Below are positions 7,500 through 62,491 of a stretch of 64,000 nt of DNA, in pieces. Made by a program: the position numbers and the translations under genes. Under the pieces are notes generated by a model, which worked only from the letters and a program-made list of their open reading frames with translations, was not told where the DNA came from and did not search any database. The DNA comes from Octopus sinensis (taxonomy: Eukaryota), in contig NC_043010.1 in assembly GCF_006345805.1 (NCBI RefSeq), positions 14,756,001 to 14,820,000 on the forward strand, written 5' to 3'. The number at the start of each line of letters is the position of its first letter. Position 1 is the stretch's first letter.

Positions 7500-9996
7500 A
7501 GAGGAATTGGAAGAATTCTGGAGAGATATGGTCGGCGAACGAACCACCAAAAAAAGGAGTATCAAAATAACAAACTCGGCATCTGAACAACTTGGACCCC
7601 CATAACACTGAAGAGGTCACCCAGGCACTGCAAAGACTAAGCACTGGAAGGCACCTGGGCATGACAAGATCCCCAACTTCTGGTTGAAATATCTAACAGG
7701 AATGCACAAAAAGCTGGCTGAAAACTTTAACAACGTACTAGCAGAGCCAGAGACAATGCCTGAATGGCTCACGAAGGGGAAAACCATCTTAATTCCCAAA
7801 TCAAATGAAACAGAAAAACCAGAAAACTACAGACCAATAACCGGCCTCCCTACTATGTTCAAGGCATTTACTGCAGTGATATCACAAAGGCTGAACAAGC
7901 ACCTGGACGAAAACAACTGTTCCCAGAAGAGCAGAAAGGATGCCGCAAAGGCTCATATGGCTGTAAAGATCAACTAATGATTAATAAAGCCGTAACTGAA
8001 GACAGCCACAGAAAGAAGAAAGGCCTCAGTATGGCCTGGATTGACTACAAAAAGGCGTTTGATAGCATCCCCCACACATGGATCCTCGAAACACTAGCCA
8101 TTAACAAAGTAGCACCAACAATCATAAAATTCATAGAGCACTCTATGAATAAATGGCAAACAGTCCTACACCTCCAAACAAAAGAGGGACTCATGAAAAC
8201 CAAAGACATCCCCATTAGAAGAGGAATATTCCAGGGAGACACGCTCTCTCCACTCCTTTTCTGCTTGGCACTGTCACCTCTATCTGATATGCTAAATAGA
8301 ACTGGATGCGGATATAAATGTTACGGCAAAACGATCAGCCACCTTTTATATATGGATGACCTAAAACTATACGCTGCAAATGACAAACAGCTGGAAACAC
8401 TATTAAAGACAGTTCATGGATTTACCAAAGAAATAGATATGAAATTGGATTAGAAAAATGCGTCAAAGTAACCATGAAAAGAGGAAAACTAGTTAAGAGT
8501 AACAACATCACACTAGATAAAACCAATGAAATAAAAAATTAGACCAAAGCCAAACTTACAAATACTTAGGAATCCATGAACTAGATAAGACACAACACAC
8601 ACAAATGAAAGAGAATAAGAAAAAGAATATTATGGACGAGTTAGATCAATACTAAACACAGAGCTCAATGCTAAAAACAAGATAATAGGTATCAACACTT
8701 TAGCTGTCCCAGTTATAAGTTACAGCTACAATATCCTTAACTGGACACGAAATGAACTGACCAAAATAGATAGGAAAACAAGAAAAATAATGACAGGATC
8801 TAGGATGCATCACCCAAAATCTGACATAGAAAGACTATATATACAACGTATAGAAGGTGGTAGAGGCCTTATACAGCTGGAAAACTACTATAAAAACCAC
8901 CATAGGACTGCAAAAATATCTACTTCAGAAGGAAGGAAAACTGATCCAGATAGCGGCAAAACACGAGCAAAACAAAAATCTGTTCTCAGTATTTAAGGAA
9001 GCTGACAAATACAAACAAGAATCATACCACCTAATAAACATGAAGAAGAAGAAGAAGATGAAGAAACAACAAAAGCTATAAAACAAATGAAAACCCAACT
9101 AAAATAGAACAGCAACGAACCATGATAAAACGATGGCAAGAAAAGCCCCTTCATGGTAAATACTGGACTAAACTAAACGCAAAAGAAATAGACAAAGAAA
9201 AATCCCAGCAACGGTTGAGAAGCTCAGGACTCAAAGCAGAAACAGAGGGATTTTTAATTGCAGCACAAGACCAAAGCCTCCCCACCAGAAATTACCAAAA
9301 ACATGTAATGAAAAGAAATATTACAAGTAACTGCAGAATATGTGGAGATGGGACAAGAAACAATAAATCATATTATCTCTAGCTGCCCAGTCCTGGCTAA
9401 GAAGGAATATATTCACAGACATGACAGAGTTGGAACCTACATACATTGGAAGCTATGCCAACATTATGGAATAACAACAGAAAAAAGATGGTATAGGCAC
9501 ACACCAGAAAAGGTCACAGAAAACGAGAAAGCAACCATACTCTGGGATATGCCGATACACACAGATAGAGAAATTAAGGCCAACAGACCAGATATAGTTG
9601 TCAGAGACCATGAAGAAAAAAATGCTTTCTAATTGATGTATCAATACCGGCTGATGACAACGTGTCTCTAAAAGAAATAGAGAAACTCTCAAAATACAAA
9701 GACCTGGAAATAGAGGTAACTAGAATGTGGAATCTGAAAACAGAAACAATTCCTATCATAGTAGGTGCATTAGGCATGATAAAAAAAAATATTCAGACAA
9801 ATACATAACAAAAACACCAGGACTTACAAACACATATACATACAGAAAATTGCACTACTAGGCACTGCACACATCCTACGCAGAACACTTTCCATACAAT
9901 AACCATCAGAGCATCACAACAAATCACAGCACATACCCAAGGCACACAGAGCTGCGCTCGGTAGTGAAGTGAAAGCACGCTATAAAAATAAAACTA

Positions 9997-10000
<4 letters not shown>
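7500..10000 (+). mobile_element. 5'-truncated, frameshifted R4/Dong-clade (RLE) LINE
   Basis: RT motifs KAPGHDKIPNFW, WIDYKKAFDSIPH, GIFQGDTLSPLLF, HLLYMDDLKLY, YKYLG; zinc knuckle CRICG..ETINHIISSC; RLE motif RPDIVV..LIDVSIP; (AAT)n after 10000. Confidence 0.93.
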
Positions 10001-10034
<34 letters not shown>

Positions 10035-11434: not shown

Positions 11435-12393
11435 CGGAGTCTGATCCAATAAGTATCCAGACTGTTGCCATAGTAACGAAGCTAAAGCTTGCAGAGTGAA
11501 GCCGCTGGGTAAAAGTCGACCATGAAGCCTGCTGTGCATGCGCACAAAGTTTTTCTGTTCTGGCTCACTTCCGCTGTTTACAGCAGTGCTGGGAAGGAAG
11601 CGTATGTAGCGTGTGATCGTCGCATTGACTATGATTAAATTGTAATGGTGATACCAGTTCAGAAGCCTAAGCAAAGCTACAGAAGATGTAAGGAGAGTAG
11701 TTTATGAGCCCCACACAAGTGTACAAGTGGTTCAGACGTATTCAAGATGGCCGAAAAGACGTCGACATTAACGAACGTTCTGGAAGACACGCAACTAACT
11801 GAAATGATAAAAAAATCGCAGATGTGTGTGCAGCTGAGAATGTAAATCGTCGAATCACCATCTGTAAGTTAACCAAGGATATGCAGATTAGTTTCGGTTC
11901 AGTTCAGTCCATTATCACTGAAGATTTAGATATGAGACGCATGTCTGCCAAGTTTGTGCCCAAACTGCTTTCAGCTGACCAAAAAGACACACAGGTTTCA
12001 ATTGCACATCATCTTCTTGATTGTGTCGAGAACGATGAAAACTCTTTGAAAGTTTTGCGTAGGACTCTGAGCAGGTATCGACAAGCTTTTGGCAAAATTT
12101 GATGCAGATTCTCTGCTCAACTTTCTCTGTCATTATCAATGCGACGACGACGACACGCTACGCACCTTCCTTCCAAGCGCTGTTTTAAACAACAGAAATG
12201 AGCTAGAACGTTAAAATTTAGTGCACATTAAAATGGCGGTGCCCCAGCATGGCCACAGCTCGTGAGCTGAAACTAGATAAGAAAAAATATAAAAATGCAC
12301 AGCACAGTTCAAGATCTGTGCTAAGCAGTTTTACGCTGCGTGCATTAGTTTCGTTACCATGGCAAAGTCCGGATACTTATTGACCAGACCACG
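11435..12393. mobile_element. Rearranged mariner remnant: two 5' halves in inverted orientation
   Basis: About 48-bp degenerate TIRs (aataagtatcc[a/g]gac...gcca.[a/g]gtaacgaa). The plus strand encodes VYKWFRRIQDG..ERSGR..LDMRRMSAKFVPKLL; the minus strand from 12139 encodes MTEKVEQRICIKFCQKL. Confidence 0.85.
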
Positions 12394-12711
12394 TTTATAT
12401 ATGTATATATATATGTGTGTGTGTGCGTGTGTGTGTGTGTGAGATTATTCTTAGGTGTATGCAAGATAGTAAAAAATTATTAAACGGTGGTTTCGTGGAG
12501 TCCCTTGTGTTATTTTGCCACCAGAGAATCATATAAGATCTGTTCTCAGTAATAGCTTACGCTGGATAAACTTAGACGCAGTGAGTAGGAGAGGAATATT
12601 GTACTTCGGAACTATCGATTAGTTTGACAACAGATTTCAGTTTTTTTGCCGACTGTTGAATAGTTAAATAATAGTTAAATAAGTGGCTGTGTGGTAAGTA
12701 GCTTTCTCACC

Positions 12712-14847
12712 GAACGGACGCGTTTTTTTTTCGCTCCGGCAAATGTCACGTTTTAACGTGAATTGTTGAACTTTTGACTCGACTACAGGTAGGCGTTTTG
12801 TATTTTTGGGAGCTTAGCGAAGTCTATTACTTGCATTTATGTTTTTTAGCATTTAATATTTTTTAGCAGATAATAAACTCCACTTTGCTCCAGATATAAT
12901 TTTTCTGCCTGTTGTCGAGCGTAAAGACTCACTTTGCAGTGAGAATTGTATTTTTAAAGCGGCGTAGTCCGTCTGCAAAAATTGTTTTTGAAATTGTCTT
13001 TGTGTTATCCACGGGAATTACCAAGGAGTACCAAGGATTATTTTATCAAGGTGTTTTACCAACTGTGCATTTGGCCTGGAATACAATTTTTAGGCCGAAA
13101 AAAGTGAAAACAAAAAAAAAAAAAGAAAAAATTAATTCCTTTGTCTGGATTTGAACTCTCTTTCTCCGTTTATCATTTAATTTTTTAAAAAAGAACTTTT
13201 TTTGAACTGCTATTTCTAATTTTATTTCTTCCCTTCTGTTGTATTTTTCATTCTCCTTTCTGTGTCTTATTTTATTTTATCACATTTTGAACTGTCTTTA
13301 AATCTTACGTTATGGCAAAGAAATTCACTGTGTGAGATTTGACACCTCCCAAAAAATATTTGAATGAGCTCCAGGAAAAGACCATGGTGCTGAGGACATA
13401 TTCGAAGTCGCTCGACACCATAGCAGTCTTTCCAAAGGCCACTATTGTTAACGAGCTGGCAGACTACATGCCAGCCGTTAAATACATCGCACGAGGAGTT
13501 AAATACGCAACGGTTTTGTTGCTATTTGACTCCCCTAAAGCAGCTTGCAAATTTGCAAGCCAGCCCATTGAGGGCAAACAAATATTGTTTCTCCCAAATT
13601 ACAAGGGAGAAAAATTGTTGAGAGCTTGGATCTGCGGCTTACCACCAGGCGTTGAGCCCGAGTGGATAGAGGACTCTATCCGCCGGGGCTTGGATGGTAG
13701 CAGTTCCAAGCTACTGAACGTAAAAGTACAGCCTGCGGCTGATTGGGAGGGATAAAGAGCTGTTTTGACCCTATGGACCCAGTCAGCCAAAAGTCTGGTT
13801 TTACCGGACTTTTTGAGGATGGCCGGGTACAGGTATCCGGTGATGCTTGAGGGACGCCCCCCCCCCAAGTGTCACCTGTGCCTGGAGCCTGGACATATCA
13901 AGAGGAAGTGTCCCGGTGGCCGTGGTGCTGCCCCGGAGCATGAAAAGGAAAAGGTGTCCGCTGCCCCCTCATTGGAAGGGGAGACGGTGGAAGTCGTGGA
14001 GGAGGTTGCCTTCACGAAAAGAAAGAGACAGGTTGCTTACCAAAGAACGTACAGACGGAGGAGGAGGATAGCGACCCCCCGTGTCTGCCGAAGGAGCCCC
14101 CGGGCTAGCAGCCTCTAAAAAAAAGAGGAAAAAAAAAAGAAAAAGAGGTCGGACGGCTGACGTTTCTGTGTCGCCGACGGAGCCACGGGTGGGACGTGTG
14201 CCACCCGCGGACAGTGCTCCGTCAGTGGAAAGTGTGCCACTGACGGATCAGTGTGAGGTCCCTTCCTGTGAAGAGGAGTTGTTTCTCCTCCTTTACCACA
14301 AGGGAGGGAAGGTGGAAAAGTTTTTGAATGGCTTGGGTGACCGAGAACGCAAGGACACGGTCAGCTCAAGGAGTCCGTTATGGCCTCCGTGGGTAGCTGC
14401 GGAGGTAGTAACGGAAAACATTTTGTCAAGGGTCACAAAGACCTTTGAGAGGAAACATTTTACTTTTCTCTTTGCAGGCCTCGACTTGTCGTCGCAGAGT
14501 TGTCTGCAGGCGGCAAGATAATTTGCTTCGGGGACCTGACAGGGAGAATTTTGTGAATTCATATACTGCCCTTGTGGCAAAAGAAATGAAAAAAAGAACT
14601 TTGTAAGAGGTTTTAGTGCCTCCTTCGTGTAAGAGGTTTGCGACCTCATGTCGATTTATTGAAACTAAAGAAAAAAGAAAATTGAACTTATTAAAAAAAG
14701 AACAATGTCTTAGAGAAGCGGAAGTCGGCGGGCGCTTTTTGACTTCTCCCATCACCATCTTCATCCACCACCACCATCATCCATTTATGTCTTTGTCCAG
14801 CCCGTAGCTACTCTGTGTACTGCCCTAGTGGCAAAATTGTTGAAATA
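12712..14847 (+). mobile_element. ORF1-only (HAL1-like) non-autonomous retroelement, probably Tx1/L1-related
   Basis: 16-bp TSD aagtagctttctcacc / aagtagcttgctaacc; 5' end cggacgcgttttttttt; 600-bp 5'UTR; zinc-knuckle ORF; no RT or EN; 3' end ...gaaata. Confidence 0.75.
13312..14521 (+). pseudogene. Gag-like ORF1 of about 400 codons with a CCHC knuckle
   Basis: ATG at 13312; in-frame stops at 13333 and 13753; one frameshift near 14040-14080; VMLEGRPPPK-CHLCLEPGHIKRKC (CX2CX4HX4C); basic tract KKKRKKKRKR. Confidence 0.75.
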
Positions 14848-14987
14848 AAGTAGCTTGCTAACCAACCACATGGTTCTGGGTTAAGTCCCACTGCGTGGCA
14901 CCTTGGGCAAGTGTCTTCTACTATAGCCTCGGACCGACCAAAGCCTTGTGAGTGGATTTGGTAGACGGAAACTGAAAGAAGCCCGTC

Positions 14988-15026
<39 letters not shown>

Positions 15027-15670
15027 TGTGTGTGTTTGTGTGTCTGTGTTTGTCCCCCTAGCGTTGCTTGACAACCGATGCTGGTGTGTTTATGTCTCCG
15101 TTACTTAGCGGTTCGGCAAAAGAGACCGATAGAATAAGTACTGGGCTTACAAAAGAATAAGTCCCGGGGTCGAGTTGCTCGATTAAAGGCGGTGCTCCAG
15201 CATGGCCGCAGTCAAATGACTGAAACAAGTAAAAGAGTAAAAGAGTACTGATGTTCTGCTCCGGCAAGTAGTCGAATATGGGCTGCGCAATGAGGAACAA
15301 AATAACATAAACGCTTCAGACATTTGTTGTTTATCGTAGAACGAGCTAAATATAAATAACTTGAGAATCATTAAGAATGGGTGAAGTGAGGTTAAACGGG
15401 TGAAGAGGGTGAAAATGGTGTACATATTATACATACATGCACATTCACAAACACATGTATATATATACACACACACACATATACATAGATACAAAAATCA
15501 ATGAGAGGAGGAAATACATTCGTGGGTTTGACTGTTCTGAAAATATCTTTTTTAATATTTGCATGGCTATTGTTCTAAGGTATCGCTCTAAGACCTGTTA
15601 CTTACTACCTAGCGAGCCTTCACAAAAGTAAGAGAGTGTGAGAGAGAGAGAGAGAGAAAGAGATAGGTAG

Positions 15671-25920: not shown

Positions 25921-26385
25921 GGTACTCTGAGAATACAACTGTCTCAAGTGATCTAAAAGATGTTGAACCTGTCTACCAAAAACGTAAGCTTGGAGGACAA
26001 GCAGGCATCATGCCAGGAAAAAATCAATGCATGGGCACATATCCCGTAAGCTAGGGGGCAACAACAGCATTGACAGGAAGAGTAACCTCTCCTGGGCCTG
26101 GGACAGATACATTACAACCCACCTAGAAGGTTTATGCCTTCGCTAACCATGAACAGGAGACAGCTACTAAATACCTCATAAACAAGAGAGACAAAAATAT
26201 CAACAAAACTCCACGTTGTGATAAAAATATCGGCTCTGTAATACTAGTGTGGAAGATATCATGCTCATCATCATCAGCTGCCCCAAATTGTCTACGAGAT
26301 ACTACATAACCCTGGGCATGATATCACTGCAAAGACTAATTACAATGCAATCCGCAGGAAGGGCTCCCTTGGCGTATACATTAAA

Positions 26386-26762
26386 GGCGGCGAGCTGGCA
26401 GAAACGGGCGAAATGCGTTGCCGTATTTCGTCTGCCGTTACGTTCTGAGTTCAAATTCCGCCGAGGTCGACTTTGCCTTCAATCCTTTCGGGGTCGATTA
26501 ATTTCAATAAGTACCAGTTACGCACTGGAGTCGATATAATCGACTAAATCCGTTTGTCTGTCCTTGTTTGTTCTCTCTGTGTATAGCCCCTTGTGGGTAG
26601 TAAAGAAAACGGTATTTCGTCTGCCGTTACGTTCTGAGTTCAAATTCCGCCGAGGTCGACTTTGCCTTTCATCCTTTCGGGGTCGATTAAATTAAATAAA
26701 TCCGTTTGTCTGTCCTTGTTTGTCTTCTCTGTGTTTAGCCCCTTGTGGGTAGTAAAGAAATA
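26386..26762 (+). mobile_element. SINE-A tandem dimer
   Basis: The second unit begins at ggtatttcgtc (26611) and is internally deleted. Confidence 0.88.
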
Positions 26763-27301
26763 GGTATGTTAGAACCAGTAGGTATTCACACCTTTAAAAA
26801 CAAGGAATACCAGTGGAACACTCAATAAAAACATGAGTTCGGCGCAAACATAACACACTTGATATTGTTCTATGGGACCAGGAACAAAAGTCATGCTGCC
26901 CAGCAGACGTGAATGTGCAATCAAAAGTCCAAGAAAAAGAGAACATTTATGGCGAATTAATGCAAAACTTACAGTGCTTGTAATCTGACTTTGAATTCTC
27001 ATCTGCACCTATTATCAATTTTTAAAAACCCTACGAATACTCAGCTTCACGAAGAAAGAGCAAAAGAAATAGATGCGGTTTCTTCAAATCCAATCTATTT
27101 GTGGCACGTTGAAGATTTGTAAGACATTCCCAAAATTCTCCATCTGAGATTCTTATGTGAATAGACGGATATACTTGGGTATATGCATCGGCAGTTCAAC
27201 CGACACACCAACTCAACCATACACTGAGAACTCTCTTAAATAAAAAAATGTCATATCCCGTTGAACTCTCTCAAGAACTTAAATAAAACTCAATGAAAAA
27301 T

Positions 27302-31719: not shown

Positions 31720-31762
<43 letters not shown>

Positions 31763-31763
31763 T

Positions 31764-33190
31764 GTTTCTTTATTAGCCACACAGGGCTGCACACAGACAG
31801 AACAAATTACAAGGTAGAGCTTTTCTTTTAGGGGTAAAAAAGAGCGGGTCGGTTTTCGATCAAAAGGGATCGTAAAAGGAAAGAAAGAGGACAAAAAAAA
31901 GGGGAGGATTTTAAAAAAAGGTGGGGAGAGGGAAAAAAAAGAAAAGGGGAGAGGGAAAAAAAAGTTGATCAATAGGGATCGTAATCACAGAAATGTCAAT
32001 ATGAAGTGTAAAGGGGAGGACAGGTGAGGTTTACCCGTAGAAAGAAAAGCCTACGGAAAAGACCACGGTAACCTCGGTCAATGAAGTCACATGTTATATT
32101 TCTTTTTTTTTTTGCAAATAAGCAACTCTCTGTATTAATTTTTACGGTTCATAAATCATAGTCAGGGTGGCTTCGTCATTCATACGTGCCATCCTTGCTA
32201 CATTCACCCATCTTTTTTTAAAACATTCACTAGACAAAACTTGTCTCTCTACTCTCACTTTCCTCTTCAAGTGATACTTGAAGAAGTTGATGAGAGATTG
32301 ATCAGAGAGGAAAGTGTTTGTCTCTAATCCTTTCAGGCGCGTCCACCAGATACATTCTTTCGCCATAGCCACAAGTATGATAAAAATAGCTCTTCCTTCC
32401 CGTTTGAAGGAAGGAGGCGTGACGATATTAACGATAGACTCGGCTGATAAACCGACACGTCCCACACGTGACAGCAGTCGTTCGACATAAGCTCACAGGT
32501 CGGAAATTGCTGGACACTGCACGATTGCGTGCAGAGCGGTTTCGTCGCTCTGCCCGCATCTCGGGCAGGTCGGCCCCGTGTTTCCCGAGCCATGCCTATA
32601 GAGCTTATCCCGAACGGGTAGCGCTTCTCGGTAGCACCGCCAGGCCAGGGATCTCTGGAAGTTGTCCATAGGTCCCGGGCCGAAAGTCGTTTGAAACAGG
32701 CGGGTCAGGTATTCCTCGTCGACGCCCAGGTTTGCCCCGAGATCGTCGTCGTACCTCCCCTCCACTAATCCTCTATAGAATGCTTTGGTTTTGTTGAAGT
32801 CACTCAAGGTCGACCCGGGACGGCAGAGTTGCTTGAAAGCAAAGCGACACTCGCGGTGCCATTCGCCCTTCCTCGGCCTCTTTTTGATCCACGACTGCAG
32901 CTCGGTCATGGAGACGAGTTGCGGGAATGCGTGCCTCACAAACGGCGACCACACCTGTTCACTGTCGTCTACATAGAGCCGGAGATGTCGCAGTCTCAGC
33001 GCGTGTCTGCGCATCATCAACCACGGCATGTCCAGCCCTCCTTTTAACGGGTGTTGACAGCAAATGGATCGCCTGACCATCGGGACGCATCCTTTCCACA
33101 AGAAGCGGAAGAGAATGCGTTCTAGTTTGGTGATGGTAGGGTCGGGACAAGGTACGACAGTCAGGCGGTAGTAGATGATGGACGCGATGT
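31764..33190 (-). mobile_element. 5'-truncated Tx1/L1-clade LINE in a (GATA)n tract
   Basis: ORF2 C-terminus 33190-32142 with a single in-frame TGA at 32493: LFRFLW..GGL, AWRCYREALPV, CPRCGQSDETALHAIVQC (zf-RVT-like). 3'UTR ends aataaagaaac. (TCTA)n on both flanks. Confidence 0.88.
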
Positions 33191-33218
33191 AGATAGATAG
33201 ATATATAGATAGATATAT

Positions 33219-33366: not shown

Positions 33367-33536
33367 GTTTCTTTATTGGCCACACAGGGCTGCACACAAA
33401 TGGGACAAATTAAAAGGTAGAGCTTTTCTTTTGGGGGATGAAACAAACAAAAAAACAAAAGAAACAAAAAAAAGGGGTGGCGTAGGTTTTCGATCAAGAG
33501 GGATCGTAAAAGGGAAGAAAAGAACAAAAAAAAAGA
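33367..33536 (-). mobile_element. Second 3'-end copy of the same Tx1 family in the same (GATA)n tract
   Basis: Similar to 31764-31920; flanked by gata repeats. Confidence 0.85.
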
Positions 33537-33966: not shown

Positions 33967-34376
33967 TATTTCTTTATTACCCACAAGGGGCTAAACACAG
34001 AGGGGACAAACAAGGACAGACATAGGTATTAAGTCGATTACATCGACCCCAGTGCGTAACTGGTACTTAATTTATCGACCCCGAAAGGATGAAAGGCAAA
34101 GTCGACCTCGGCGGAATTTGAACTCACAACGTAACGCGGACGAAATACCTATTTCTTTATTACCCACAAGGGGCTAAACACAGAGGGGACAAACAAGGAC
34201 AGACATAGGTATTAAGTCGATTACATCGACCCCAGTGCGTAACTGGTACTTAATTTATCGACCCCAAAAGGATGAAAGGCAAAGTCGACCTAGGTGGAAT
34301 TTTAACTCACAACGTAACGCAGACGAAATACCGCTAAGCATTTCGCCCGGCGTGCTAACGATTCTGCCAGCTCGCC
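33967..34376 (-). mobile_element. SINE-A tandem dimer with TSD
   Basis: tgtcaggtacc duplicated at 33956-33966 / 34377-34387; internal junction at about 34150. Confidence 0.92.
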
Positions 34377-34863
34377 TGTCAGGTACCGTTTATGAGTTAA
34401 ATAGATTTACCAAAGGTGGAGAAGACTCTTGTGACTTTTGACGAAGAGTCGTGGGAAGCAGCTGTTGTAGGAGAAAGATACTCAGACATAAAACTTCTCG
34501 TACCGGTTATCTTCCGATGCTTGCCACAGGAATCTATTATGGTGACCGAAAGAGTAGCAAAAGTGTTGTTTAAGCTTCTGTCACCGATAGCTCACTGCTC
34601 ATTTCTGAATGTGAGGTGACTATCATCTGGCAAGTTCAGACGAATACTCTACAATGTCATTCTAATAATCCTTTCTGCTATAGGCGTAAGGCCTGAAATT
34701 TGAGGAATGAAGTGTGAGTCGATTACATCGACCCCATTGCGTAACTGGTACTTATCTTATCAACGCTGAAAAGCATGGATGGCTAAGTTGACCTCGGTGT
34801 AATTTGAACTCAGAATGTAAAGAAGGAAGACATGCGGCTAAACATTTACGAACGTACTTCCAT

Positions 34864-55083: not shown

Positions 55084-55154
55084 GGCGCAGGAGTGGCTGT
55101 GTGGTAAGTAGCTTGCTAACCTTCGTCGAAGTCGGACGTGTTTTTTTGGCGGTG
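55084..55154 (+). mobile_element. SINE-B head broken at 55121 by a foreign 5' end (cggacgtgttttttt), then an assembly gap
   Basis: ggcgcaggagtggctgtgtggtaagtagcttgctaacc|ttcgtcgaagtcggacgtgtttttttggcggtg. Confidence 0.75.
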
Positions 55155-55254
55155 NNNNNNNNNNNNNNNNNNNNNNNNNNNNNNNNNNNNNNNNNNNNNN
55201 NNNNNNNNNNNNNNNNNNNNNNNNNNNNNNNNNNNNNNNNNNNNNNNNNNNNNN
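55155..55254. other. 100-N scaffold gap
   Basis: Run of N. Confidence 1.
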
Positions 55255-55538: not shown

Positions 55539-55875
55539 AACACAACCGCAGCCCGGTCCGGGATGCGTGTTGGGCGCAGCCCGGTCCCCCCAACACGCAT
55601 CCCGGACCGGGCTGCGTGTTGTGTTCTTGAGCAAAGCACTTTATTTCACGTTGCTCCAGTTCACTCAGCTGTAGAAATGAGTTGCGACGTCACTGGTGCC
55701 AAGCTGTATCGACCTTTGTCTTTCCCTTGGATAACACTGGTGGCGTGGAGAGGGGAGGCTGGTATGCATGGGCGACTGCTGGTCTTCCATAAACAACCTT
55801 GCCCGGACTTGTGTCTAGGAGGGTAACTTTCTAGGTGCAATCCCATGGTCATTCATAACCGAAGGGGGTCCTAAA
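55539..55875 (+). mobile_element. SINE (label SINE-E) with an inverted 5' end and an 11-bp TSD
   Basis: TSD tatcttatatg at 55528-55538 / 55876-55886; 28-bp perfect inverted repeat 55547-55574 / 55589-55616. Confidence 0.75.
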
Positions 55876-56464: not shown

Positions 56465-56893
56465 GGATCTTTTCGGTTTGAACGGCAGTCTTTTCTAGCG
56501 GTGTCATATGAAATTGCCACCCATAATTATGACCCTAGAATCGATCTATTGCATTTCAATCTCTTTTAGGGTTAGGGTTAGTTAGGGTTTGGGTTAGGGT
56601 CAGGGGTGGGGGGAAGGGTATCTATTTTTCTTCACAAATGTAAATAAGCCCAATCTGTTTCTTAATCGAGAGACATATTCATACAGCACAGAATGCTTTT
56701 TAACTCAATAGACGTTGAAATTGCAGAAATTGAAGAAAAAGAAACAACAAATATCTTACAAACTATAGAATTTTCTCAATAAAGCCAAGAGAAAAAGATG
56801 TTTTATAAAGACATTCTACCAGTATACGAAGTTTAAAATCTTTTAGTTACCTAGAAATTATGTTAAAAACTGCCGTTCAAACCGAAAAGATCC
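56465..56893 (+). mobile_element. 429-bp MITE with GGATC TIRs and an 8-bp TSD
   Basis: Perfect 25-bp TIR ggatcttttcggtttgaacggcagt; TSD ccgaattt at 56457-56464 / 56894-56901. Confidence 0.95.
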
Positions 56894-59189: not shown

Positions 59190-59976
59190 GTATACATGCG
59201 ACGAGTTTTTTCTTCTGCTTCTTATTTCTTTATTGCACACAAGGCGCTAAACTTAGAGGAGACAAACAAGGACAGACAAAGGGATTACGTCGGTTGCATC
59301 AACCCCAGTGCGTAACTGGTACTTATTTAATCGACCCCGAACGGATGAATGGCAAGACGACCTCGGCGGAATTTGAACTCAGAACGTAAAAACAAGCGAA
59401 ATACCTGTTTCTTTACTACCCACATGGGGCTAAACACAGAGGGGACAAACAAGGACAGACAAATGGATTAAGTCAATTATATCGACCCAAGTGCGTAACT
59501 GGAACTTGATTTATCGACTCCGAAAGGATGAAAGGCAAAGTCGACCTCGGCGGAATTTGAAATCAGAACGTAGCAGCAGACGAAATACCTATTTCTTTAC
59601 TACCCACAAGGGTCTAAACACAGAGAGGACAAACAAGGACAGACAGACGGATTAAGTCTATTATATCAAATCCAGTGCGTGACTGGTACTTAATTTATCT
59701 ACCCCGAAAGGATGAAAGGCAAAGTCGACCTCGGCGTAATTTGAACTCAGAACGTAGCAGCAGACGAAATACCGATGAGTATTTCGCTCGGCGTGCTAAC
59801 GTTTCTACCAACTCGCCGCCTTTTCCCCTCAGTTTCTGTCTACCAAATACACTCACAAGGTTTTGGTCGGCCTGAGGCTATAGTAGAAGACATTTGCCCA
59901 TTGTTCTACGCAGCAGGACTGCACACGAAACCGCGTGGTTGAAAAGCAAGCTTCTAAACTACACAGCCATACCTAC
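58885..59976 (-). mobile_element. Older SINE-B-like copy split by the SINE-A trimer
   Basis: The tail half is at 58885-59220 and the head half at 59821-59976. Confidence 0.7.
59223..59820 (-). mobile_element. SINE-A tandem trimer
   Basis: One head and three bodies; junctions at about 59405 and 59590 read tail|ggtatttcg. Confidence 0.92.
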
Positions 59977-62130: not shown

Positions 62131-62491
62131 TTATTCTTTTACTGGCCACAAGGGCTCATATAAAATAACATTAAAAGACATGTAACAACATTAAAGACAA
62201 ACACGGGGTGATACAATGGGTTTTACTGCGTATACACAATATAATAACAATAAAAATTAAACAAGATAAAACTCCCAATAGGGGAGGTACTTTAATGACC
62301 TCGTGAGAAAACCCAGAAAAGCCACGGGTGCCTGAACAATAGGACAAGTGCCCTTCTCCTTTAGTTTACAGGTGCACGTTCAGAAGTGGTCCTTTCACAC
62401 TGGCCATTCTTCCAACATTCACCCACCTTTCAACAAACTTGCTACAAGGCAACACTTCCTTCTCCACCCTCAACTTTCTTTTCAAGTGATA
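62131..62491 (-). mobile_element. Tx1-clade 3' fragment, second lineage, abutting (TAA)n
   Basis: YHLKRKLRVEKEVLPCSKFVERWVNVGRMA* aligns with YHLKRKVRVERQVLSSECFKKRWVNVARMA at 32142-32290; ends agcccttgtggccagtaaaaagaataa. Confidence 0.82.

Follow-up and report, generated by a model that had tools for sequence, protein, structure and literature searches.

A HAL1-like, ORF1-only LINE derivative of octopus that probably targets the head of a SINE

Did a retroelement that splits the head of an octopus short interspersed nuclear element (SINE) land there by chance or by choice, and what kind of element is it? The question is raised by a 64,000-nucleotide stretch of Octopus sinensis contig NC_043010.1 (positions 14,756,001 to 14,820,000 of the forward strand; hereafter the window, from whose first letter coordinates are counted). 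The open reading frames (ORFs) of the window have Octopus proteins as their nearest relatives, and its SINEs are also present in O. sinensis and O. vulgaris loci. Within it, the head of one copy of the SINE that we call SINE-B is split by a 2136-bp insert (12712-14847), named E1 here, of which the window contains no other copy. We show that E1 belongs to a family that keeps a 5′ untranslated region (UTR), the first ORF (ORF1) and the conserved 3′ tail of a lineage of long interspersed nuclear elements (LINEs), and that has lost ORF2. E1 is a real element, HAL1-like and derived from a LINE lineage with target specificity, and it probably targets the SINE. On balance, the evidence leans toward E1 being a dead copy of a non-autonomous, ORF1-only family that came from an octopod L1/Tx1-type LINE lineage, targets SINE-B and is mobilised in trans.

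The host SINE is found on both sides of E1. The left piece (12682-12711, + strand) is a 5′-truncated head that contains the A-box-like motif and has a 93% match to intact SINE-B heads, and its last 16 nt are the left copy of a target-site duplication (TSD). The right piece (14848-15250, + strand) starts with the right TSD copy and continues with the B-box-like motif, the SINE body, a (TA)n(TG)n stretch and the 3′ end, with a 92-94% match to three other SINE-B copies. The pieces overlap in SINE-B coordinates by AAGTAGCTT(T/G)CT(C/A)ACC, which is present on both sides of E1 and forms the 16-bp TSD (12696-12711 and 14848-14863; 14 of 16 positions identical; direct repeat D8), as target-primed reverse transcription (TPRT) leaves. 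E1 establishes at least one genuine insertion into SINE-B, since the host sequence picks up again precisely at the 16 duplicated nucleotides. The TSDs of SINE-B itself, being too short or indistinct, do not prove that both pieces come from a single SINE copy. As read from the sequence, the insertion point lies between the A-box-like TGGCTGTGTGG and the B-box-like GGTTCAGTCCC. An earlier note on this DNA had described a 2136-bp element with such a duplication between the A and B boxes of SINE-B, and the overlapping SINE coordinates bear it out. The same note spoke of a tRNA head; the A- and B-box-like motifs suggest a tRNA origin, but neither ARAGORN nor Rfam called the SINE-B head a tRNA, and we call it tRNA-like. 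On its upstream side, the truncated left piece adjoins a perfect 11-bp tandem duplication (12659-12682; AATAGTTAAAT, 2.2 units). The flank upstream of the left piece bears no more than a weak likeness to a tail of the family (p about 0.07).

Three more copies were found, and in all four the SINE-B head directly 5′ of the element breaks off at one and the same position (within 1 nt). E2 lies in the window (55084-55154, + strand); its complete SINE-B head (55084-55121) breaks off after GCTAACC, and the next 33 nt are a related 5′ end (TTCGTCGAAGTCGGACGTGTTTTTTTGGCGGTG) that runs into a 100-N assembly gap (55155-55254). Past the head, its sequence TTCGTCGAAGTCGGACGTGTTTTTTT... is homologous to GAACGGACGCGTTTTTTTTT of E1. 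Between its head and its GGACG motif, E2 has 8 additional nt, which is what integration in separate events would give. E3 (O. sinensis, locus L001) was located through the only close protein homologue of the E1 ORF1 (P0001); it has a complete SINE-B head ending in ...GCTTGCTTCC, then the element 5′ UTR, and the copy is cut within the C-terminal part of ORF1. E4 (O. sinensis, locus L004) was found through the chimeric gene model P0015 and has a more diverged head ending in ...TTGCTTCC. Sequences outside the heads are unrelated among the copies, and E1 alone shows a TSD. The idea that E3 and E4 are segmental duplicates was rejected, since their flanks upstream of the heads have just an 8-mer in common.

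These junctions bear on the simplest alternative, namely that a non-specific retroelement landed in a SINE by chance and that the other junctions are coincidences or duplicates of one locus. SINE-B is indeed abundant, with five heads in the 64-kb window, of which two are interrupted at the E1-type site. However, the four junctions coincide to within 1 nt on a 38-nt head, and they lie in different genomic contexts and on different chromosomes, apparently in the lineages of at least two species, and the elements differ by about 30% in nucleotides, so that they are not recent duplicates. We consider a chance landing hardly credible.

The coding content of E1 is that of a LINE reduced to ORF1. Its ORF1 (13312-14521, + strand; ATG 13312 to TAA 14521) is disabled, has about 402 codons and encodes two RRM-like domains and a CCHC knuckle, along with a linker rich in K and a C-terminal region specific to the family. 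It carries four lesions (TGA 13333, TAA 13753, a 1-nt deletion near 14044 and TAG 14069), one more than had been counted before for a CCHC ORF1 whose length, about 400 codons, was otherwise right. When the ORF2 sequences of two full-length relatives were used in tblastn searches for endonuclease (EN) and reverse transcriptase (RT), the window gave matches only at 32184-33197 and 62378-62491, and none in 12000-15500. Since no ORF2-like sequence is found in or near E1, the previous description of E1 as ORF1-only, with no RT or EN, is correct, and E1 is a non-autonomous derivative. A likeness of the end of ORF1 to the ORF2 ‘LER..F.FLW.G’ motif is weak (E about 0.5) and is not shared by E4. A protein search with the C-terminal part of ORF1 fused to a junction-spanning reverse-strand ORF returned only a SINE-B-derived O. 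vulgaris model.

The same layout is found in E4, in which ORF1 stops at the codon equivalent to that of E1 and a tail-like motif (TTGTGGCA in E4) follows about 50 nt on, with no ORF2 downstream. The ORF2-less layout is thus common to two copies (n = 2) that diverged at a number of synonymous substitutions per site (dS) of about 1.3, and is a HAL1-like family trait; E1 is probably not the unique internal deletion that the earlier note had allowed for. In addition, a second, unrelated ORF1 lineage (P0011; locus L014 about 7640-9655, O. vulgaris OX597833.1) has an intact ORF1 of 379 codons and a 500-nt 3′ UTR with the tail motif at about 9607-9655 and (TA)n on both sides; no EN or RT was found within 8 kb of it, and it has no SINE-B head. 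The layout of the P0011 element shows that loss of ORF2 with ORF1 kept recurs in the octopod LINE superfamily, as HAL1 does in mammals. Separately, Logan contigs from six SRR118693xx runs (L007-L012) hold the same contig of roughly 1.7 kb with an intact ORF1-like gene of 294 aa (P0007); no ORF2 is found in the following 560 nt, and this may be another ORF1-only transcript.

It could be argued that E1 and E4 arose separately, each by a single internal deletion in a full-length and possibly SINE-B-specific LINE, and that no ORF1-only family propagates. Internal deletions are common in LINEs, the junction from ORF1 to tail is visible in only two copies, and the junction region aligns poorly. Against this stand the equivalent ORF1 stop, with a tail-like motif about 50 nt later, in copies so far diverged, and neither E1 nor E4 retains any trace of ORF2. 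Protein searches also gave no ORF2-bearing close relative, and the unrelated lineage with an intact ORF has the same ORF1-plus-tail layout, so that this architecture recurs in Octopus. Independent deletions are therefore quite improbable.

The earlier note had proposed to compute dN/dS of ORF1 across copies. In pairwise comparison of the E1, E3 and E4 ORF1s the ratio lies at 0.23-0.28 (95% bootstrap, upper bound no higher than 0.41; dS 0.9-1.3), which shows that ORF1 evolved under purifying selection. The low dN/dS at high dS indicates long diversification with a functional ORF1, single copies having decayed later; the ORF1 of E3 is open over 281 codons. The E1 ORF1 is 64% identical to its O. 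sinensis homologue P0001, for which an AlphaFold 2 model built with 29 relatives (pLDDT 81) has two beta-alpha-beta-type domains whose best fold matches in the PDB are tandem-RRM proteins, for example hnRNP A1 UP1 and NONO/SFPQ. The CCHC knuckle (13867-13914) matches Pfam zf-CCHC with E = 0.013, which is under the curated cut-off. The ORF1 product is of an RNA-binding type with tandem RRM-like domains and a CCHC knuckle. An ORF1 profile search returned Octopus ORF1-like proteins, and by tblastn the E1 ORF1 matches ORF1 of full-length LINEs with E = 1e-9 to 6e-11 (1e-10 for an Argonauta LINE and 6e-11 for the Octopus LINE-Y). Two gene models also contain this ORF1: LOC115225585 (O. sinensis, L001 10001-10846) consists of it entirely, and XP_029639579.1 (‘K02A2.6-like’, L004 10001-36638) fuses its first 46 codons and translated 5′ UTR to a downstream integrase-like fragment. 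Both should be treated as transposon-derived.

The 3′ end ties E1 to its autonomous relatives. The tail motif GCCCT(T/A)GTGGC...AAAGAAAT ends E1, the L1/Tx1-type LINEs of the window, another SINE, and full-length Octopus and Argonauta LINEs; its bearers are LINE-X and its second fragment, SINE-A, LINE-Y, LINE-Z, and the Argonauta LINE with its SINEs. The core CC..GTGG.A is invariant in all ten aligned tails, including those of LINE-X, LINE-Y and the Argonauta LINE. The motif is also present in at least 17 SINE-A copies and in the LINE tails at 31761-31800 and about 33370-33400 (minus strand), so that the resemblance to the LINE tails of the window that had been noticed before is well founded. 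A specific tail common to a LINE and its dependants is a classical sign of recognition by the RT of the partner LINE (PMC4494074).

LINE-X (31761-33197, - strand) is a 5′-truncated L1/Tx1-type LINE that retains the C-terminus of ORF2 with a zf-RVT-type CCHC, the 3′ UTR and the tail GCAGCCCTGTGTGGCTAATAAAGAAACATA; its ORF2 is 59% identical to that of the Argonauta LINE. A second, short LINE-X 3′ fragment lies at about 33370-33500 (- strand). In both fragments (TCTA)n comes after the tail motif, and the upstream one also has (TCTA)n in front of it. LINE-X looks specific for a microsatellite, and it stands for the autonomous lineage with which E1 has its tail in common. Full-length LINEs of the same superfamily, inserted in (ATT)n, were found in Argonauta hians (L002 4848-11210), behind three tandem tRNA-like SINEs with the same tail, and in O. 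sinensis (LINE-Z, L006 9720-15370). LINE-Y (L005 4438-19184, O. vulgaris OX597840.1) forms three head-to-tail full-length copies that are 99% identical, with a period of about 5.28 kb and no spacer between one tail and the next 5′ end. The ORF2 proteins of the Argonauta LINE and LINE-Y have APE (Exo_endo_phos), RVT_1 and zf-RVT domains and are collinear with human L1 ORF2p, an L1-group architecture for which we use the label L1/Tx1-type. The autonomous relatives, too, are target-specific, for (ATT)n and (TCTA)n microsatellites.

Several other sequences of the window and of the databases belong beside these LINEs. SINE-A forms head-to-tail arrays of full and 5′-truncated units at 26380-26763, 33968-34400 (- strand) and 59200-59800 (- strand). 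Its tail CTCTGTGTTTAGCCCCTTGTGGGTAGTAAAGAAATA matches that of the O. vulgaris LINE-Y, which is its likely partner. The protein P0075 carries the label ‘MAG: Herbaspirillum sp.’; it has 61% identity with the ORF2 C-terminus of LINE-X and is probably cephalopod DNA binned in a bacterial metagenome-assembled genome (MAG).

At its 5′ end, E1 is complete. The 5′ UTR (12712-13311, + strand) has the terminal motif GGACGCGT at 12716-12723, which has one base in common with a T9 run at 12723-12731, and it aligns with those of E3 and E4. GGACG(T/C)GT is found within about 20 nt of the 5′ end in E1, E2 and LINE-Z, with near-matches in LINE-Y and the Argonauta LINE. Because this 5′-terminal motif is common to E1 and its relatives, E1 is full-length at its 5′ end and abuts the SINE directly.

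The 3′ end is double. A short 3′ UTR (14522-14592, + strand) contains the internal tail motif TACTGCCCTTGTGGCAAAAGAAATGA (14564-14590), 45 nt past the ORF1 stop, of which the 12-mer TGCCCTTGTGGC and also AAAAGAAAT recur in the tail of the Argonauta LINE. It is followed by a second 3′ module (14593-14847, + strand), which ends in the terminal tail CTCTGTGTACTGCCCTAGTGGCAAAATTGTTGAAATA (14808-14847) and occurs only once in the window and the searchable loci. The internal and terminal tails are a 40-nt direct repeat with 78% identity, the internal one being the better copy of the motif. The 255 nt that come after the internal tail close with the terminal one, and everything is enclosed by one TSD pair. 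After the internal tail, AAGAACTTTG agrees with the start of the TSD at 7 of 10 positions, which is too weak for a middle copy of the target. The double tail may come from two hits at one site, from an end-to-end template jump between two family RNAs, or from a duplicated UTR. The preferred reading is either that a single event joined two family RNAs or that the site was hit twice, and the arrays formed by the relatives make both plausible. By analogy with known chimeras, template switching by RT is a possible origin of the double tail and also of the SINE-B head.

RNA folding of the E1 5′ and 3′ ends was no better than that of shuffled sequences. A ‘mini-element’, suggested by an internal 8-mer like the 5′ end at 14718, was dropped since such an 8-mer is expected by chance. 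A conserved 3′-UTR box was likewise unsupported; 9- to 10-mer matches are present, yet they are non-collinear.

The weightiest alternative concerns the head itself. The first 38 nt of SINE-B may travel with the element, acquired in one ancestral insertion or by a template switch, in which case there would be no SINE specificity. The SINE sequence 3′ of E1 would then be due to a founder-type locus, to homology-guided resolution, or to an adjacent 5′-truncated SINE-B. The variants of the head follow the element lineages, GCT(A/C)ACC in E1 and E2 and GCTT-CC in E3 and E4, which is exactly what inheritance of the head would predict; GCTTCCC does occur among intact SINE-B copies. E4 has the head at its 5′ side with no detectable SINE-B remainder 3′, the head of E1 is 5′-truncated like a 5′-truncated LINE copy, and repeated 5′ additions of small-RNA sequence are documented in the Tx1-mobilised SINEU (PMC4494074).

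Other features of the junctions speak against a travelling head. In E1 the SINE resumes at the duplicated 16 nt, and a chance neighbour starting precisely there is very unlikely. The right TSD copy of E1 has the rare A variant GCTAACC, as does the head of E2; this variant is found in only 1 of 11 intact heads (p about 0.04, Fisher’s exact test). The heads are 84-97% like the SINE-B consensus, near enough to it, while the 5′ UTRs next to them can hardly be aligned between the two lineages, which fits landing in young SINE copies. A transcript that starts at the 5′ end of the SINE would require RNA polymerase III (Pol III). The A and B boxes are 2.1 kb apart in E1, and runs of T9 (E1, 12723-12731) and T7 (E2) follow directly after the head, so that the head and element do not look like a Pol III unit; transcription by Pol III through such runs and across 2 kb with no B box nearby appears implausible. 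Finally, such a head is missing from the autonomous relatives and from the second ORF1-only lineage. We regard a head that travels with the element as unlikely.

Repeated targeting of SINE-B is favoured over these alternatives with moderate confidence. A number of observations weigh against it. Both junctions are visible in E1 only: E3 is 3′-truncated, E2 ends in a gap, and the 3′ flank of E4 is not a degraded SINE-B, its local alignment being no better than with shuffled sequences. The SINE therefore continues past the 3′ end in one of the two assessable copies (E1 and not E4). Protein searches gave no ORF2-bearing copy behind a SINE-B head and no autonomous close relative of this ORF1. Copy number also looks low, with only two gene models in protein databases, and no further copies were found in metagenome contigs (searched with protein and SINE-head patterns), GTDB genome contigs and IMG/VR. 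The sample is four copies, two of which were found through the element itself. The earlier note had proposed a SINE-harboured hyperparasite that is mobilised in trans. The ORF1-only LINE derivative with its lineage’s tail, next to a broken head in each of the four copies, agrees with this proposal, but no ORF2 donor specific for SINE-B was found.

If SINE-B is the target, insertion could proceed as follows. The element RNA, probably coated by its own ORF1 protein, would be recognised through its tail by the endonuclease and RT of a related autonomous LINE, whose enzyme would copy it into the genome by TPRT. A nick at GGT^AAGTAGC in the bottom strand of SINE-B and a second one in the top strand, 16 nt farther downstream and behind GCT(A/T)ACC, would split the SINE between its A and B boxes and yield the 16-bp TSD, and targeting of this kind predicts flanks of ...GTAAGTAGCTTGCT(A/T)ACC on the left and AAGTAGCTTGCT(A/T)ACCAACCACATGG... 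on the right. Site specificity would be supplied by the endonuclease of the donor, and a high-copy SINE would serve as a harmless landing pad. That this is a long-lived ORF1-only lineage strictly specific for one nucleotide position in a tRNA-like SINE head is a bolder claim, which we put forward tentatively and would sooner doubt than assert.

Both halves of this picture have precedents. HAL1 is a non-autonomous, ORF1p-only LINE derivative with LINE ends that depends on ORF2 in trans, as the octopus family seems to, and it arose several times (PMC5753468), just as the octopus layout is found in two separate ORF1 lineages. The two differ in that the parent of the octopus family is an octopod L1/Tx1-type LINE with a specific 3′ tail and not poly(A), in that the octopus ORF1p has tandem RRM-like domains and a CCHC knuckle whereas that of HAL1 has coiled-coil, RRM and CTD domains, and in that the octopus family has an apparent fixed target site and HAL1 has none. 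Given its host and its ORF1, the octopus family is an analogue of HAL1 and not a member.

Tx1-clade LINEs target DNA transposons (Tx1L in Tx1D of Xenopus; Tx1-Mar in Mariner-N4_AMi of crocodilians), LTR elements, snRNA genes and microsatellites, and SINEU elements have the same target as Tx1-Mar (PMC4494074). In these systems, as here, L1-group LINEs and their dependants prefer another transposon family, and partner and LINE have like targets. However, the octopus target is a SINE head and theirs is a DNA transposon or LTR element; the octopus dependant bears a selected ORF1 and SINEU is short and non-coding; and no autonomous partner of this specificity has been seen in octopus, where the relatives show L1-group architecture and may belong to the Tx1 clade. 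Keno, Mutsu, Dewa, Kibi and Koshi are target-specific Tx1-clade LINEs that insert precisely in multicopy RNA-gene-like sequences or microsatellites (PMC4494074). They are similar to the octopus relatives in (ATT)n and (TCTA)n and to E1 in a SINE-B head with tRNA-type A and B boxes, but they are autonomous and sit in genuine small-RNA genes or simple repeats, while the octopus element lacks ORF2 and sits in a retroposed SINE. U6/L1-type chimeras and the 5′ extensions of SINEU also have a small-RNA-derived segment directly 5′ of LINE-type sequence. The extensions of SINEU-2, however, vary by up to 22 nt, whereas the octopus head break is constant within 1 nt, and template switching does not give the 3′ SINE continuation of E1 with its 16-bp overlap.

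L1-Tx1 LINEs are widespread in molluscs (PMC10294476), and the octopus LINE literature that was searched describes RTE and Dong elements and nothing like the E1 family (PMC9115989). In our literature searches, no SINE-head-specific LINE-type element and no invertebrate ORF1-only family was described. This agrees with the earlier view that the combination is undescribed, although each component has a precedent in HAL1 or in Tx1L and Tx1-Mar. The octopus family is new in joining two known kinds, the ORF1-only derivative and the transposon-targeting LINE.

Three other features of the window were recorded. A decayed LINE of another type, with RT (Pfam RVT_1, E = 2e-20) and broken ORFs, lies at 7612-9629 (+ strand); its tail region extends to about 10030, and (AAT)n lies behind it at about 10000-10030. 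Just past the assembly gap, a near-perfect GC-rich palindrome with about 35 nt per arm (CAGCCCGGTCCGGGATGCGTGTTGGG...CCCAACACGCATCCCGGACCGGGCTG) is found at 55545-55625. A short, degenerate, telomere-like stretch (GGTTAGGGTTAGGGTTAG...GGGTTAGGGTCAGGGG) is interstitial at 56567-56612.

ORF1-only LINE derivatives are known mainly from mammals, as HAL1, and how they persist is little understood. Target-specific LINEs attract study as models of insertion that is safe and programmable. If the reading favoured here is true, a non-autonomous element can be sustained for a long time by an ORF1 that is retained and selected, autonomous and dependent partners can have target specificity in common, and SINEs can act as safe harbours. 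The element would then be a parasite of LINE enzymes that uses another parasite as its landing pad, which would imply either a still unseen autonomous partner of the same specificity or a role of the ORF1 protein in the choice of target. Taken together, these results point to a superfamily of octopod LINEs in which the 3′ recognition tail is conserved and the targets vary, namely (ATT)n, (TCTA)n and a SINE head, and which is a natural system for how endonuclease and tail set the target.

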